DNA of 63,972 nt, the filler included, from Klebsormidium nitens (Eukaryota; Plantae; Klebsormidiophyceae), in NCBI GenBank assembly GCA_000708835.1. It is 4 parts of 4 records of this genome, joined end to end, with 100 filler letters (N's around TTAATTAATTAA, not from the genome) between each part and the next. Parts side by side here need not be neighbours in the genome. Positions count along the whole stretch, not along the records: positions 35,381 to 61,069 come from DF237834.1; 3 more parts are not named here. One strand, given 5' to 3'. The number at the start of each line of letters is the position of its first letter. Position 1 is the stretch's first letter. The notes under the pieces are model-generated. The model saw only the letters and a list, made by a program, of their open reading frames with translations, made no database searches and was not told the origin of the DNA. Shown here piece by piece: positions 40,701-61,069 of the stretch. A program made the translations under genes and the position numbers.

Positions 40701-43700
40701 GTGCCCCTTTTGACAAAGGAAGCAAAGGATCCGGAGCTTAGCTTTCACGACTCAAGCTGTACGGCCCTGAGATGGTGGCCTTGTCTCATACTTAGCGACA
40801 CGGTTTGGAAAGTCATCCCTTCCAAATCTTTACCTTTTCGACATGTCTTGGTCGTCGTTTAATATTGACGTTTGCACGATTGCACCCAGTTTGGCAAGCC
40901 CGTGACTACCCGCTTTCGGACCTTTTTGCTATCATTATTGGACGCTGCGGGCAAGGACTTCCAACATCTTCGAGAGTCGGGTTGCCGTGACCTCCGCTTG
41001 CCGCACCTTTTCGAAGAACGGTATAGCCAGAGCTTCAGAGAAATATGTACATGGTCTCCCGTGCTAAAAACCTGCTTTCGGACGCTCTCTTGTTCCAGAT
41101 TTGGAGGATGCGGACCACCACGGACACCACGAGCACAACCACGACTGGGGCCACGTGCCGAACGCCAGCAAGCTGGGCACGGTGACGCTGCCCCCAGGCG
41201 TACACCTGACGTCGGACCTCAGCATCAATGCTGATGAGTTCCTCGAGCCCGTGATCGAGCCGCCAATTCACTCGGAGGCTGTAAGTCTGGAAGCGCATGG
41301 TGAAGAGATACAATTTGAGGAATCCTTTGCCAGACAGTAGACTGTTTTAATGCTTGCCGTCCCACTTCTGCTCCTCGTTTCTTACCCCTCTTCGTTCTTC
41401 CTCGCTTAAGAGCAAAGGCATGGAACTCGCTGCGGCAGTACCTATGCTAGGGGTGCACAAGCAGGAAAGTCCAATCGGCATCCCTCAGGACTGACGCCGG
41501 CTGACTCTCAGTGGACAGCCGCCACCGTCCCGGCTCACTCCCCCAAACTTGCTGCTTATCTCTCACTGACGAAAATGTTCCGCTCTGCAGGAGAGGCCTC
41601 AGGAGCCGACGAGCAGCCAGCCTTCGCCTCGCGAGCCCACCCAGCCTCCGACCAGCCTTTGGCCCGCCGCAACCCCGGGCCCCCCACCCTCTCCCCGGGG
41701 TCCGTCCGCAATCACGGCGGCAGCCCTGACGGCCCCCCCGGCGCTGCCCCAGATCTCCACCACCCGGACCACAGCCCCCGGGATCACGAACCCGTCGCCA
41801 AAGGGCGGCCCGTCGCCGAAGACGGCGCCATCGTACCCGGTCGCCGCAAACGGAGTCGCGGCGCCGTCGCCCAGGGTCTCGACTGCGACTGGCGTCTCGG
41901 CCGGGGTGGCAAACAGCCCGTTCGTGCAGGCTCCGAACCTGAAACCGGTGTCCGCACCAGCGGCCGGGGGAGCCCCCTTAACCGGGGGAATGTCGTCGGC
42001 AAAGCGGCGCCCGTCGGACCCGAACTTCAAGACATCCAACGTAGAGAAGATGCTCAACCCGGGCAGCCAGATGTACCTGGCGCCGTACCGCGTGGTCCTT
42101 GGTGACGTCAGGCAGAAGGTGAGGCGAGATGAAAGGATGGAAAAACATTGCAGAGGATATCACTGCTCAGTGCGGTGTCGTTGCTCAGATTCAGCTGCCT
42201 GTCACCTTCAATCGGTGGTTGGGGATCTCATAAACGACGGAACGAAGACGAGGGCTTTTTGCATAATCAAAGTGCTGCACCAAGTGTGTCAGAGGTCACT
42301 TTATGCTGGTCCTTCTTCGCTTTCTTTGAATCATAGGAATGTTTCCTGGGTGCGACTACAGACAATCTTGTCAGCGCAGTGCACATAAAGCGAGAGCGTA
42401 TCCGTGCCCCATGATCTCCGGGTGGGGTAGAAGCATAGGCTCTGTCGGACATCGCTGTGCCTCTTTCGACAAATCTGTCATTCGCCATTATCATACTTCT
42501 TTCCCTGTACGTTGAGGGGCCCTTCGTCGCTCTGGCCTCTATCATTGGTCCTGGTTGTTCACTATCTTGTCCGCATGCAATCCTCACGCCCGTGATGAAT
42601 CCCAAAGTAGATTCTCACGGTTGGCTTCAAATCAAATTTAGTCGCCGTTGCTTCCGTCTCCCCTCTCAGCTCGTGAACACCCGCCGGCGCATGGAGCAGT
42701 TCCTGGACCACCAGCCTCCCTCTACCGAGGAGGAGTACTACGAGACCGGAGAACAGCTGGCAGCACCTTTGCTGGCGATCTACGAGTCGCTGCACCAGAC
42801 GGGGGCGGGTATCATTGCTGACGGAAGGCTGGCAGACACCATCCGCCGGTGCCACACGTTCGGAATGAACCTGATGAAGCTGGACTTGCGCCAGGTGAGG
42901 AGCGAGCCGTCGGAAGCTCGGTCATTGAAAATAAGATTGGTTATGTTCGCAAGGACATATGTCATCTGTTTTGGTGGCCATCCAAAGACGCCGTCTCAAC
43001 CTTTGTATTGTTTCCTGCACATGAGTGCTGCTGACAGATGAATAGGGGTGCCCGGGACACTTCCACCCAAGCGCGCGGCTCGCACAGAAAGACGTTCATC
43101 ATCGAGCTTCGTGTAGCCCGCTCTTTCTTTTGCGAAAGACAGAATGTGAATTGAAGGAGCTTCGTTGAGGGGACTGACCAGGTCCGTTATTCTTTTTGCA
43201 TCAGACGTCATCGTATACTCTACGGCTTTTCATCCGAGGTCAGCAGAAATCCATATTAAGACCTTCAGTCCCCAGTCTTTCACACCCTCTCTTTATAAGG
43301 CGGACCGCCATACGGAATTCATCAACTGCTGACCGTTTGCCCTGAGTTAGGCTTATATGAAAAATAAACACTCACCAGCACTCCAGGTTATAGATTACAA
43401 GGGTTGCTCTTCAGATACACCCCTTAAGCTTCATCTTCCTTGTGTGCCCGCAGGAAGCGGACCGCCACACCGAGGCGATTAACGCCCTGACCGAGTACCT
43501 GGGGATGGGCTCCTACAAGGAGTGGACCGAGGAAAAGAAGCTCGAGTTCCTGGTGAGCGAGCTGCGTGGAAAGCGGCCGCTGATCCCCAACAACATCGAG
43601 CTCAGCGAGCCCGTAGCGGAGGTCATCGACACGTTCAAGATCGCCGCGGAACTGGGCACCGGCTCGCTGGGAGCGTACGTCATCTCCATGGCGTCCGAGG

Positions 43701-52215: not shown

Positions 52216-53376
52216 TCACTTCCATCTGCTGAACAAGGAAGTAGCCTCTTGAAACTTGGCTATCCAACGTCTCAAATCGAATGAGATTGGGGTGTGAGAA
52301 ACCCAAGGAGGCGACTTCTTGGTGATCTTCGCTGCAAAAGCCCGAGCCTCCGCCACATTTTTTTTTCTCGCTACCTGAAAGTCCTCAGAAATATCGCCAA
52401 CAAAGCCGGTCTCCTTCAAGAAAGGACCCAGAGCCTCCTTCTGCTTCCCGAAGTATAAGTTAAGGGCGATTTCACGAGCCAAGCTGGCAAGATTCTCGAC
52501 CTGCACCGGGTCAGGATTCGTCCTCGCCTCTACCAGCATCTTCTCGCGCATCTTAGCCAGGAGCTTGACCCCCAGTTTATTCCCCACTGCTAGTTCTCCA
52601 TCCACCAGAAATAGAGCCACGAAGTTGTTCACACGGAATGACGTATGCCGCCCTGCCTGCAGTTTCATGAGGACATCCCAAAAGACACTTTCAAAGACGT
52701 TGGGGTATGCGTCCCAGGACTTTAGCAGCTCCTCAACAAGTGGTTTGTAAACGGGTTCTTTGAGCCTTGAGTCCATGGTCCGACTGAGTTCATACCCGTG
52801 TTTGCGCCCCAGCTCCTCTATCCGGTCGAAGACAAAGCGAACAGCCTGCACAGGGGGGCCGGCTACGCCCATCCCTTTCTGGGACTCATCCAGAATGCCA
52901 ATAGTCATCTTGTCTGAACCAATACCGTTTTCCTTCGAAAGGCTGTCCCGCTTCTCTGAACAACTCTGAGTCTCCGCCTTTTGAGGACTTAACTCTGCTC
53001 TTGTAGAGAAGGAGAAGGCGTTGTTGCTCCACGCTTTTCCCTCACCGGGCAGATTTGTGTACCACGGAGCTTTGAGAACACCTTCGCCAAGAAGCACGCA
53101 CCTCTGACCACCTTTCAGGGCACTTCTGATTGCTTCCGAAACCACGTCAAGCCCTTTGGTAAACAAAACCGGCCTGGTTGCAGACTCCTGCGCCCTCAGA
53201 GCAGAGTGGAAGCAGCTCGGAGGAAAAGGCGGGGCACTGTCTTGGAGATTGGTGATTTCCACCACAAGAGTTTCCTTCTGCGCTGCAAGGTGTTGACCAG
53301 ATAAGCATGGCACCGCCGATGCTGCCGGTGCTGTTAGGGATAGAGCGCGCCTCGTGATGCTGATTCCGCCTGCCAT
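52216..53376 (-). CDS. Intronless hypothetical protein (386 aa), unknown family
   Basis: Uninterrupted ATG-to-stop ORF. Conservation against the neighbouring paralog supports coding status. Confidence 0.75.
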   Translation of the reverse strand: MAGGISITRRALSLTAPAASAVPCLSGQHLAAQKETLVVEITNLQDSAPPFPPSCFHSALRAQESATRPVLFTKGLDVVSEAIRSALKGGQRCVLLGEGVLKAPWYTNLPGEGKAWSNNAFSFSTRAELSPQKAETQSCSEKRDSLSKENGIGSDKMTIGILDESQKGMGVAGPPVQAVRFVFDRIEELGRKHGYELSRTMDSRLKEPVYKPLVEELLKSWDAYPNVFESVFWDVLMKLQAGRHTSFRVNNFVALFLVDGELAVGNKLGVKLLAKMREKMLVEARTNPDPVQVENLASLAREIALNLYFGKQKEALGPFLKETGFVGDISEDFQVARKKNVAEARAFAAKITKKSPPWVSHTPISFDLRRWIAKFQEATSLFSRWK

Positions 53377-57619: not shown

Positions 57620-58417
57620 CCAAGCTTTCAAAACCTGCCTATACTAAAGGCCCGTGGTTCGACCTTCGGCTTCCTATCCTACACGGGCAGGGTACACCGA
57701 AATTGGCGTCTAACTAAAGTCTGAGGAAGGCCCAGCAGTCGGGCAGTCGGAGCAGCCTGCTTAGATGCTAAGGGCTTTTGTCTACAATAATGATCCCGAG
57801 CTCCGATTCGGCGCTCAACCGTCGTGATCCCGAACGCGTAATATGTTTGATCCTATTCAGCCAGCAAGCAACTTGCGAACTTAACATGTGCTACTGACAT
57901 GTCCATGCAATGTGCAAACGAGTAAATGCATCCGTCGGATGGTGAATATAATCTTAACTGAGGAATCGCAGTCAACGAATGTGCATGGATTGACTGCATA
58001 GCAGAGCTAATCAAACGTATGTATAAACATATTCACATGCATGCAACGTGGATCTATCATGTGTTTGACCCACTACCAGCCTGAGACAACCCATGCCTTG
58101 GATCTGCGTAAATTTGGACGAGGCACGTGACCTGAATTTTGCCAAGTCGATCAATTTGCTAGGTTTGAAACGGAGTACTGACAGTGAGCAGGCTTGACCA
58201 ATAGCGCTTGAGGCACATCGAGTGGAGAGTTGACACGAGGTTGACACATCATATCAAGAGTCGCTTACATTCATTATGGCTTGTGATGGAACTTGTACGT
58301 ACATAAGTTAGGACGCAATTGAGGTCACAAATGTAAGGCAATCACCATGCTGAAGATAACCGAAAGCATATGACGCGTGATGGATTAGTGCAATCCTTGC
58401 TTATATCATTCACTTTC

Positions 58418-60856
58418 CTACCACCACCATGCCTTTCCAACTTTCAAGTGCTTTTTAGCAATGCCATCGCCCTGCGCAGCAGCTTTTGAAAGCCACGCCT
58501 TTGCCTGCACCAGATCTTTTCCCACTCCTATACCATTTTGATAGCACAAACCTAAGAGAGATTGCCCTTTCACATTTCCTTGTTCTGCGGCTCTTCGGTA
58601 CCACAGCACTGCCTTGCCACTATCTTTGTCCACGCCCTTCCCTTCAGCATACCAAAGCCCTAAAGCCAGTTGTGCTTCTGGTTTCCCTCCGTTAGCGGCC
58701 TCATGATACCAATACACTGCCTCCTTCGTGTTCTTTTGAAAAGGGGAGTAGCCGTCAGCATAGCCCTTGCCGACGGCATATTGAGCGTCTACATTGCCAT
58801 TTTTGGCGGCCCTCAGAAACCAGTACAGCGCCTTTGAATCACTCCTGCTCACACCTTCGCCCTTGGAGTACAACACACCCAAAGCATATTCAGCATTTGA
58901 AAACCCTTGCACTGCGGCTTGCTGAAAATACCGCAGAGCCTCTGTGGCATTCTTATGAATGCCCGCATCTTCGCGATAATGGACGCCCAGCCGATACTGT
59001 GCATCAGAGGCTCCTTGGTCGGCGGCCTTCTGGTACCAAGCAATGGCCTCCGTCAGGTTTGATTCGACACCCCAACCATTTTCGTGACAAGTGCCCAAAT
59101 TTACTTGTGCCATTGCGTTGCCCTGGTTGGCAGCCCTTCTGAACCAAGCCAACGCCTTTGAGGGATTTGCATAAACCCCCCATCCCTTCATGTAGCAAAC
59201 GCCCAAAAGTTGTTGTGCCTCCGCAAGGCCCCGCTTAGCAGCCCTGCTGAAGCAAGCCGCTGCCTTCAAAAGATCCTTGTGCACACCAGAACCCTTGAAG
59301 TAGCACGCGCCTAGTTGGAACTGTGCCTCTGCAAGGCCCTGATCAGCAGCCCTCATGAAGCAAGCGGCCGCCTTTGCAGCATCATTACGGTCAACCCATC
59401 CTTGCATGTAGGAGAGGCCTAACTTGAACTGTGCCTTTGCATGGCCTTGATCAGCAGCCACCCGGAACCAATTCACTGCCTCTGAGACATCCTTCCGCTC
59501 ACCCCATCCGTCCAATAAGCAGACGCCAAGCTTGAACTGTGCCTCCGCAACTCCCTGGCTGGCGGCCCTTCTGAACCAAGCCACCGCCTCTGAGGCATCC
59601 TCGTCTACACCCCACCCGGTCTCATAGCAGACGCCTACCTTGAACTGTGCCTCCGGAAGGCCTTGAAGTGCAGCCTTCTGATACCAAATCAAAGCATTCG
59701 ATACATTTTTGCCCACAACCCAGCCTCCTTCGTAGCTCAAGCCCAACATATACTGTGCAGCCAACAATCCCTGGTTCGCGGCCTTTTGATACCAAGAGAG
59801 GGCCTCGAAAGGATCTCTACTCACACCCAAACCACCAGCATAACATAGGCCCAACGAGAACTGTGCCTTTGCAACCCCCTGCTCGGCTGCCTTCCGATAG
59901 CACACCGCTTTTTGCTCCGGGTCTCTGCCCTGACACTTGCCAGGATTGGTAGTAGTGCCCAAGTGAACGGCGATCGCAATCACCACAACCACTAGGACCC
60001 CTGTCACCGAAAGAAACGACTTCAGAAAGGCAGACGGCAAAGTCACACGCATCCCCGGACCCGCACTGACTTCGTCAGAACCCCCGACTTGCGGTTCCTT
60101 CTTTGCATCACCGCCCTCCTCGCACACGCTTGGCTCAGACCCCTCCTTGACATGTTCTTCCCGGACCGCCTCCGAGCTTTCCAGCAATGCAATGAGCTGG
60201 TCCAATATAACATCCTCAGCAGCAGCCTTCTTCACATAGTATTCCTCTTGCCCCTCAGCGGCCATTGACATGAGGCGGTGCAACTCCTCATTCTGGTGCT
60301 TGAGCTTTTCCAGGTCCTGCCTGTAAACCTCGACGTCAGCATCTGACACGCACCCCTCCTGTCTCAACTTGTTGACAGTCTTAATAACAGCCGTCGGTTC
60401 ATTCCGCTGCAACTTGGGAAACTCTGCCGCGTCCTCCGGCACTTCTGCAGGATCCGGCTCTCCCACGCCCATCAGGAACTCCAATATGAGGGCTTGCAAA
60501 TCACCGTTCTTCTGCTGTTGAACAAAGTGGATGTCCACCAAGGAATTGGTTATGTCCGTATTCACCTGGATGATATCGTCCATAATGCTCTTGTAATTCA
60601 AAATCCTCGACAGCTTGCTCCCGCAACATTTCAAAAAGATGTTGTGAGCATTCTTAAGGTGAAGTTGGAGGGAAGAGAGGGCTGTGGAGTAGGAATCAAG
60701 CTGTGGTTCCTTGAGGATTGTCTCTACCTGTGGTTTGAGCAACTGGATCCGCGCGTTGAGGTTCTTTCCTTGTATCTTGTGAAACCTGATACCCCTGCTC
60801 GCATCGTTCACCTCCTGAATGAGACTCAAGATCAGGGACGCCGCACTTGCGGCCAT
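58418..60856 (-). CDS. Intronless 812-aa protein: MLKL/MCAfunc/PUB-N-like helical bundle + transmembrane helix + 13 SEL1 repeats
   Basis: Open ORF from the likely ATG at 60856. It has 13 complete 36-37-aa repeats of the form AQF.LG.CY..G.GV..D...A..W+.KAA.QG. A hydrophobic segment FLSVTGVLVVVVIAIAVHLG lies at ~59960-60020. The N-terminal helical pattern resembles four-helix-bundle death domains. Confidence 0.88.
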   Translation of the reverse strand: MAASAASLILSLIQEVNDASRGIRFHKIQGKNLNARIQLLKPQVETILKEPQLDSYSTALSSLQLHLKNAHNIFLKCCGSKLSRILNYKSIMDDIIQVNTDITNSLVDIHFVQQQKNGDLQALILEFLMGVGEPDPAEVPEDAAEFPKLQRNEPTAVIKTVNKLRQEGCVSDADVEVYRQDLEKLKHQNEELHRLMSMAAEGQEEYYVKKAAAEDVILDQLIALLESSEAVREEHVKEGSEPSVCEEGGDAKKEPQVGGSDEVSAGPGMRVTLPSAFLKSFLSVTGVLVVVVIAIAVHLGTTTNPGKCQGRDPEQKAVCYRKAAEQGVAKAQFSLGLCYAGGLGVSRDPFEALSWYQKAANQGLLAAQYMLGLSYEGGWVVGKNVSNALIWYQKAALQGLPEAQFKVGVCYETGWGVDEDASEAVAWFRRAASQGVAEAQFKLGVCLLDGWGERKDVSEAVNWFRVAADQGHAKAQFKLGLSYMQGWVDRNDAAKAAACFMRAADQGLAEAQFQLGACYFKGSGVHKDLLKAAACFSRAAKRGLAEAQQLLGVCYMKGWGVYANPSKALAWFRRAANQGNAMAQVNLGTCHENGWGVESNLTEAIAWYQKAADQGASDAQYRLGVHYREDAGIHKNATEALRYFQQAAVQGFSNAEYALGVLYSKGEGVSRSDSKALYWFLRAAKNGNVDAQYAVGKGYADGYSPFQKNTKEAVYWYHEAANGGKPEAQLALGLWYAEGKGVDKDSGKAVLWYRRAAEQGNVKGQSLLGLCYQNGIGVGKDLVQAKAWLSKAAAQGDGIAKKHLKVGKAWWW

Positions 60857-61069
60857 GCTTGCAATCCACCCTGTGACAGGAGCTCCACATTGAACCGTAC
60901 ATTGACCTCTGCTGCAGCACAAGTGGCTGATACTAGAGTGATAGATTAAAGGGTGAGAAAGTTCAGAATCAGAGTGTCAAAGGAGAGGACTTCGTGAACA
61001 ATTGCCTGGAAAGAGTTTATTAGGATAATCATAATATTAATATTGTAAAGATCAGAGGACTGTCGGAGC

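Follow-up and report, generated by a model that had tools for sequence, protein, structure and literature searches.

Necroptosis, plant helper NLRs and the MCA channel all use the four-helix bundle of MLKL, RPW8 and MCAfunc as their output device, and a related domain precedes the U-box in a family of streptophyte ubiquitin ligases. In AtPUB18 this domain, the UND, has been described as determining substrate specificity (PMC8875423). A survey of the partners of MCAfunc found MCA proper to be specific to land plants, recorded in Klebsormidium nitens only the combination of MCAfunc with U-box and Arm, and reported no Sel1 partner in any organism (PMC8049495). Here we describe a gene of K. nitens (assembly GCA_000708835.1) that lies at positions 58418 to 60856, minus strand, of the window, a stretch of 63,972 nucleotides joined from four parts of this genome; the part that holds the gene comes from DF237834.1. 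Its product of 812 residues is predicted to carry such a bundle at the N-terminus, followed by a membrane helix and a solenoid of Sel1 repeats. The domains themselves are known, but their order is undescribed and has so far been seen in a single genome. The earlier note that pointed to the gene did not recognise the arrangement, and our literature search likewise returned no description of a bundle, membrane helix and Sel1 architecture.

The protein shares features with several described systems and differs from each. The MLKL executioner domain (PF22215; PDB 6UX8, 2MSV and 4BTF; AtMLKL3, PDB 6KA4) is the best fold match of the N-terminal region and its sole significant profile match in the PDB, and both proteins continue into further helices after the bundle, which in MLKL form the brace. 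Unlike MLKL, the K. nitens protein has no (pseudo)kinase (no Pkinase Pfam match at E up to 1), thus no RIPK3-type switch, and is predicted to be permanently tethered to the membrane by its own helix. The U-box ligases with a UND, MCAfunc or PUB10_N domain (AtPUB13 type; KFL_002290150 of K. nitens; P0001 and P0006 below) are its true sequence relatives, and P0001 also has Sel1 repeats, but they have no membrane helix, while our protein has neither U-box nor ARM repeats by Pfam. MCA1 and MCA2, the Ca2+-permeable mechanosensitive channels built of MCAfunc and PLAC8, are likewise streptophyte membrane proteins, and a cluster of MCAfunc proteins lies close in language-model features (0.94); the K. 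nitens protein lacks PLAC8 and has no MCAfunc Pfam match. With the helper NLRs ADR1 and NRG1 it has in common that RPW8 is the best Pfam match of the isolated module and that the CC-R domain of NRG1.1 is found by fold (Z score 8.6), yet it shows no NB-ARC, NACHT or LRR in Pfam, and only a linker and a helix separate the module from the repeats.

SEL1L/Hrd3 and a group of bacterial and fungal kinase-helix-Sel1 proteins resemble it in that they pass the membrane once and have a large Sel1 solenoid on one side of it. SEL1L/Hrd3 has a signal peptide and a C-terminal anchor, whereas the K. nitens protein lacks a signal peptide and has its anchor ahead of the repeats; the kinase-helix-Sel1 proteins begin with a kinase instead of an MLKL-like bundle. 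On sequence grounds, the protein belongs to the Sel1 repeat family and lies outside the MLKL, PUB, MCA, NLR and SEL1L/Hrd3 families.

Domain order and kinship

The note had read the protein as a four-helix bundle, a helical region, an acidic linker, one hydrophobic helix and 13 Sel1 repeats, and each of these parts was found. The coding sequence (CDS) and its parts lie in the window as follows.

58418 to 60856, minus strand: complete intronless CDS, 812 codons plus a TAG stop at 58418-58420 (list of open reading frames, ORFs, and contigs of presumed RNA runs)
60512 to 60856, minus strand: residues 1-115, four-helix bundle of the MLKL_N, RPW8 and MCAfunc type, basic with an isoelectric point (pI) of 9.0 (AlphaFold2, AF2, model; PDB fold and profile searches)
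60137 to 60511, minus strand: residues 116-240, acidic helical region, pI 4.53 (alignment A1 and model)
60032 to 60136, minus strand: residues 241-275, acidic linker rich in Gly, Ser and Pro, in the place of the U-box (pI 4.25; no Pfam U-box)
59957 to 60031, minus strand: residues 276-300, single predicted transmembrane helix, AFLKSFLSVTGVLVVVVIAIAVHLG (Kyte-Doolittle hydropathy; modelled helix at 275-301)
58421 to 59965, minus strand: residues 298-812, solenoid of Sel1 repeats, the first degenerate and the next 13, at 331-812, regular (Pfam)

The ancestry of the N-terminal half was traced with residues 1-250. A phmmer search of 1.84 billion representative proteins returned seven proteins (E 4.8e-26 to 3.3e-8), and those with a recorded organism are from Klebsormidium.

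P0001 (Klebsormidium subtile, 686 residues): module, U-box from residue 229, five Sel1 repeats; 39% identity
P0006 (K. subtile): module, U-box from residue 219, ARM repeats
P0003, identical to GAQ85324.1 (K. nitens): module, U-box
P0004 (metagenome): module, U-box from residue 308
P0007 (Logan assembly, 279 residues, L001:137-976): module, two Sel1 repeats
P0002 and P0005: fragments

The U-box of P0001, P0003, P0004 and P0006 is found by Pfam at E 1e-14 to 1e-20. An alignment of eight family members (A1), which also served as the basis of the profile search and the AF2 model, shows that the homology extends beyond the bundle alone and spans the full module of 240 residues, with identities of 22-39%. 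Residues 116-240 align with every relative but the short P0007, and the aligned portions of the relatives stop just before their Pfam U-box. The final helix of the module, which carries the motif E-E-x-[FY]-L-x-Q-[IV]-x-x-L, adjoins the U-box in the relatives; in the K. nitens protein this helix (205-239) terminates in EDVILDQLIALLES. It is followed by the linker, in which Asp and Glu number 7 against 3 Lys and Arg and for which a single-sequence model gives a predicted local distance difference test (pLDDT) below 50, and then by the hydrophobic segment, which is absent from all eight relatives of the module. The gene is thus a branch of the alga's U-box ligase family that has become membrane-anchored, with a linker and a predicted membrane helix in place of the U-box. 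We hold this architecture and ancestry, taken jointly, with high confidence. The note had connected the bundle with the domain at the N-terminus of plant U-box-ARM proteins, and this is borne out in that no sequence relatives of the module other than algal U-box proteins could be detected.

Searches beyond this family gave little. Residues 1-300 had no match in a word-index search, and alignment A1 retrieved from the same index only the family members P0004 and P0128, with no bridge to land-plant MCAfunc or PUB proteins. No relative of the single protein was found at the metagenome loci, and a search of the ESM Atlas with the whole protein gave no usable match. Among the relatives themselves, P0001 is a U-box ligase with Sel1 in place of ARM as its target-binding repeats, and neither its order of bundle, U-box and Sel1 nor the bundle and Sel1 of P0007 is among the MCAfunc combinations of the published survey (PMC8049495). 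On the metagenome contig of P0004 (L002:131-2423), an ORF of 363 residues begins one base past the P0004 stop; it is probably the remainder of the ligase (the ARM part), which a prokaryote-style gene call has separated at an intron or a frame shift.

The hydrophobic segment, which had been taken as a membrane helix, stands up well as one. It is 25 residues long and reaches a Kyte-Doolittle peak of 2.69 over 19 residues, with nothing comparable elsewhere in the protein, which is thus a predicted single-pass membrane protein. We considered whether the segment is merely the first helix of a capping Sel1 repeat and rejected this, its length and hydropathy peak being too great. The protein has no signal peptide, its N-terminus being an amphipathic helix of the bundle, and because of this the hydrophobic helix must serve as a signal-anchor. 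Residues 298-330 (window 59867-59965, minus strand), with the pattern HLG...G...D...A..CYRKAAEQG, match a whole Sel1 repeat of other proteins, and the end of the membrane helix appears to double as the first helix of this degenerate repeat. The solenoid would therefore begin at the membrane itself, without any spacer, and the membrane helix may be descended from, or fused with, helix one of a capping repeat.

The remainder of the protein is a regular Sel1 array. Pfam Sel1 (PF08238) matches 13 stretches with 383 bits against a cut-off of 30.7 (E 2.1e-118), and a motif scan places the 13 repeats in an exact register of 36 residues from residue 331 to the C-terminus, with a mean identity between repeats of 41%. 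The array is 47-49% identical to those of P0008 and P0010 and 34.5% identical to that of P0001, and so is closer to consensus-like bacterial and fungal arrays than to the array of its nearest relative, although similarity between repeats as regular as these says little on origin. The partner domains of the Sel1 homologues in Pfam include kinases, caspase-like and trypsin-like peptidases, TIR, dynamin-type GTPases and patatin. The order of a kinase, one hydrophobic helix at residue ~300-470 and a Sel1 array occurs in P0013, P0019, P0047, P0065, P0084, P0112 and P0124. With so many homologues of this build, an effector or signalling domain followed by a membrane helix and a Sel1 solenoid is therefore a recurrent plan, and the novelty of the K. 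nitens protein is the domain in the first position of that plan. At its other end, the protein closes with KVGKAWWW, three tryptophans (window 58421-58429, minus strand); we know of no sorting signal of this terminal form.

Fold of the N-terminal bundle

A model built from the single sequence was discarded (pLDDT 43) and replaced by an AF2 model from alignment A1, which reached a pLDDT of 79 and a predicted template modelling score of 0.75. In this model the bundle is formed by helices 2-20, 27-48, 53-76 and 81-112, and residues 1-115 have a pLDDT of 83-95 in each block of 10 residues. Residues 116-240 fold into a brace-like helix (118-129), a disordered loop and helices 154-166, 172-199 and 205-239. 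In a fold search made without Foldseek, the human MLKL N-terminal domain (6ux8_A) ranked first among 48,161 PDB chains, with a Z score of 12.7 and a root-mean-square deviation (rmsd) of 3.1 Å over 136 of 152 residues. Mouse MLKL (4btf, Z 11.0), AtMLKL3 (6ka4, Z 10.6) and the NRG1.1 CC-R domain (7l7v) were also found. The four-helix bundle that the note had expected is therefore what the model contains, with MLKL as its top fold match.

Three further comparisons lead to the same superfamily. When the A1 profile was compared with all PDB sequences, the six best matches were all MLKL (E 5.9e-4 to 7e-3), and profile positions 5-115 paired with MLKL residues 4-118 across all four helices. A turn, F-H-K-K-x-G in the family and Y-C-K-K-Q-C in MLKL, is aligned, and both share a D-V-N motif in helix 4. 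A fold search of the ESM Atlas placed plant MLKL_N, DUF7792 and MCAfunc clusters in its top four rows (rmsd 2.6-3.5 over 120-128 residues), and by the language-model features of residues 1-250 the nearest Atlas clusters were streptophyte MCAfunc, MLKL_N, RPW8 and PUB10_N proteins (0.94-0.87, with 0.94-0.91 for clusters of MCAfunc, MLKL_N and RPW8). In Pfam, the isolated module of the K. nitens protein matched RPW8 over residues 12-117 (E 0.0042; 17.2 bits, cut-off 30.4) and MLKL_N (E 0.0056; 16.6 bits, cut-off 27). Among the eight isolated modules, RPW8 was found in four and MLKL_N in three (best E 4.6e-5), while DUF7792, PUB10_N and MCAfunc appeared in one each. Foldseek returned 6zvo_A with a probability of 1.00 and a weak E-value of 0.24, and phmmer with the single sequence gave no match among PDB sequences. 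None of these lines is decisive singly; the four independent ones jointly place the domain in the MLKL_N, RPW8, MCAfunc and PUB-N bundle superfamily and make an unrelated bundle unlikely.

Transcript and neighbouring sequence

The minus-strand ORF runs from 58418 to 60922, and its first ATG, at 60856, opens the frame of 812 codons. The context of this ATG is strong, with A at -3 and G at +4. Every sampled word of the gene is contained in 20 public runs. Eighteen of these, with contig sets that total 28-42 Mb, belong to six studies and are presumed to be RNA; the run type is a guess from the run search. Three presumed RNA runs from three studies each hold one contig that lies wholly on the gene, at 58399-60936, 58371-60925 and 58390-60955. 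These contigs are colinear with the window, show zero mismatches, gaps, joints or loose ends, and have depths of 47-128, while the contig of a DNA run extends past the gene into both flanks. The pattern is what an unspliced mRNA of ~2.55 kb would give, although such contigs are uninformative on the true ends and strand of the transcript. We conclude that this is an apparently transcribed, intronless gene of a streptophyte alga. Splicing or a downstream start that would remove the bundle had been raised as a concern; gap-free contigs cover the whole ORF, which means that the message retains the N-terminal domain.

Two features lie upstream of the start codon.

60857 to 60955, minus strand: 5' leader, within the contigs of the presumed RNA runs (contig starts 60925-60955), with two upstream ATGs
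61015 to 61050, minus strand: AT-rich stretch, a possible core promoter upstream of the contig starts, read from the sequence

The upstream ATGs, at 60902 and 60890, share a frame that is not that of the main ORF and have weak contexts. They open an upstream ORF of 68 codons (window 60696-60902, minus strand; 60696 to 60920 in the ORF list) that overlaps the main start at 60856, and it may provide translational control by leaky scanning.

Two artefacts were considered. A missing upstream exon beyond the edge of the piece was ruled out, as the presumed RNA contigs begin at 60925-60955 without loose ends. Bacterial contamination was rejected on the DNA contig that continues through the flanks, an exon-like phosphoenolpyruvate carboxylase piece elsewhere in the window, and the Klebsormidium origin of those relatives of the module for which an organism is recorded. 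No tandem paralogue was found within the piece by tblastn. The exact product of 812 residues is absent from a collection of 15 billion proteins, though K. nitens proteins such as GAQ85324.1 are present in it, and the same collection holds no protein more than 50% identical to the first 250 residues. The gene may be unannotated, or modelled differently, in the public annotation, or the window may derive from a different strain.

Elsewhere in the window, an ORF piece at 42457-43041 (plus strand) matches Pfam PEPcase positions 335-418 of 919 (E 3.8e-16), the middle of phosphoenolpyruvate carboxylase, and looks like one exon of a multi-exon gene within about 40-46 kb. A second ORF, at 52216-53376 (minus strand), has 386 codons and an ATG start, matches nothing in Pfam and has no identical entry in the protein collection; it is a possible intronless gene.

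Orientation, function and meaning

The orientation of the protein in the membrane governs how its parts could work together. A folded domain of ~240 residues that is finished before the anchor leaves the ribosome normally holds the N-terminus in the cytosol, and because such a domain is unlikely to cross the membrane, an N-in orientation is expected. The basic bundle, beside acidic helices and an acidic tether, also suits the anionic cytosolic leaflet. We consider it probable that the bundle is cytosolic. Other evidence is less favourable to the type-II orientation that the note had inferred. The charges that flank the helix are neutral to contrary, with a net charge over 15 residues of -1 before the helix and 0 after it, and over 30 residues of -3 and +3. 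The three sequons that the note listed are present (NVS 384, NLT 600 and NAT 636), but as evidence of glycosylation they fail, since 1.17 are expected in shuffles of the same residues and three or more arise at chance level (P = 0.10).

From this orientation a mode of action can be proposed. The ~240-residue module would already have folded in the cytosol when the membrane helix leaves the ribosome, and so the bundle would stay there and the Sel1 solenoid would be lumenal or outside. The protein would then be receptor-like, its solenoid binding a ligand or client across the membrane, and clustering of the receptor would gather the tethered basic bundles on the cytosolic leaflet. There they may behave as do MLKL, the RPW8-type domains of helper NLRs and MCA, binding to anionic lipids and forming oligomers that lead to ion flux or damage the membrane. 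We infer this receptor-like, membrane-acting function tentatively and place it somewhat short of an even chance. Any 'executioner' or pore activity is something that we purely infer, and the stronger form of the proposal, a single-chain transmembrane sensor-executioner whose tethered MLKL-type bundle opens or damages the membrane upon clustering and needs no other trigger, is unlikely.

Several observations weigh against the receptor-like proposal, and some of them lend themselves to other explanations. The nearest relatives of the protein are ligases, in which the module need not touch membranes. The module could have kept its interaction and specificity job from the U-box ligases and, as a membrane-anchored adaptor, bring cytosolic partners to the membrane, possibly by recruiting U-box paralogues through like-with-like contacts while the Sel1 repeats hold lumenal or extracellular clients in the manner of SEL1L/Hrd3. 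All detectable relatives but P0007 and the fragments run directly into a U-box, and conservation covers the entire 240-residue module, including the last helix that adjoins the U-box. The UND of AtPUB18 is described in a specificity role, not as a pore (PMC8875423), and MCAfunc with U-box and Arm is reported to be the oldest combination as well as the sole one in K. nitens (PMC8049495). A protein that has lost its U-box cannot itself ligate, however, and the likeness to SEL1L/Hrd3 falters on the missing signal peptide and on an anchor that precedes the repeats; we regard an adaptor as possible, if somewhat unlikely. The flanking charges and the long, very hydrophobic helix, if anything, lean towards N-out, and the Sel1 repeats of P0001 and P0007, which stand beside a U-box or a bundle with no membrane helix, are presumably on the bundle's side, in the cytosol. 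Together with sequons no more frequent than chance, this would fit a reverse signal-anchor with cytosolic Sel1 repeats and a lumenal or extracellular bundle. Such an inverted protein would have to pass a folded helical domain of ~240 residues across the membrane after its synthesis, the flanks differ by only one charge unit over 15 residues, and the anionic cytosolic leaflet fits the basic bundle, all of which makes the inversion quite unlikely.

The identity of the bundle and the standing of the gene can be questioned in the same way. All bundle matches in Pfam, from the protein and from its relatives, fall short of the curated cut-offs, and the unrelated five-helix bundles of the HIP1R THATCH domain and talin R13 reach Z scores of 11.3 and 10.6 against the same model. 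A Z of 12.7, with a margin of about 1.4, is thus within the range that helical bundles may attain through arrangement alone. These values, with the Foldseek E-value, would suit a helical bundle of generic kind, with no kinship to MLKL, RPW8 or MCAfunc, but four independent methods put the same superfamily first and the MLKL profile alignment covers four helices with the H/C-K-K-x-G/C turn and the D-V-N motif, so that we judge a generic bundle extremely unlikely. The RNA status of the runs is presumed only, and an orthologue of the same architecture was found in none of the word-index, phmmer and metagenome searches, so that conservation is not demonstrable. It is conceivable that the gene is a young chimera with no settled function, a lineage-specific accident that recently joined the 5' part of a ligase gene with a Sel1 array. 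The architecture is matched by no protein in any search, the exact product is missing from a collection that holds the K. nitens proteome, and the Sel1 array is nearer to bacterial and fungal arrays than to that of P0001. Yet the frame of 812 codons is intact behind a main ATG in strong context, contig depths in the presumed RNA runs are 47-128, and 39% identity to the nearest relative means that the gene is not a very recent copy; a functionless newcomer is very unlikely.

If the protein is an adaptor only, it adds modestly to the known domain architectures. If it is indeed a sensor-executioner, an alga close to the base of the land-plant lineage would have a cell-death or Ca2+ receptor that works without a kinase and without an NLR NTPase, and the N-terminal domain of the U-box ligases would have begun as a membrane-acting module. 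As to how the bundle was originally coupled to sensors, the K. nitens protein has the simplest arrangement conceivable, a direct connection through a membrane helix to a repeat solenoid. With bundle, U-box and Sel1, bundle and Sel1, and bundle, membrane helix and Sel1 all occurring in Klebsormidium, the module has been shuffled among partners there. These proteins form a small, tractable set of natural constructs with which to ask whether the U-box ligases use their N-terminal domain to act on membranes or to bind proteins.

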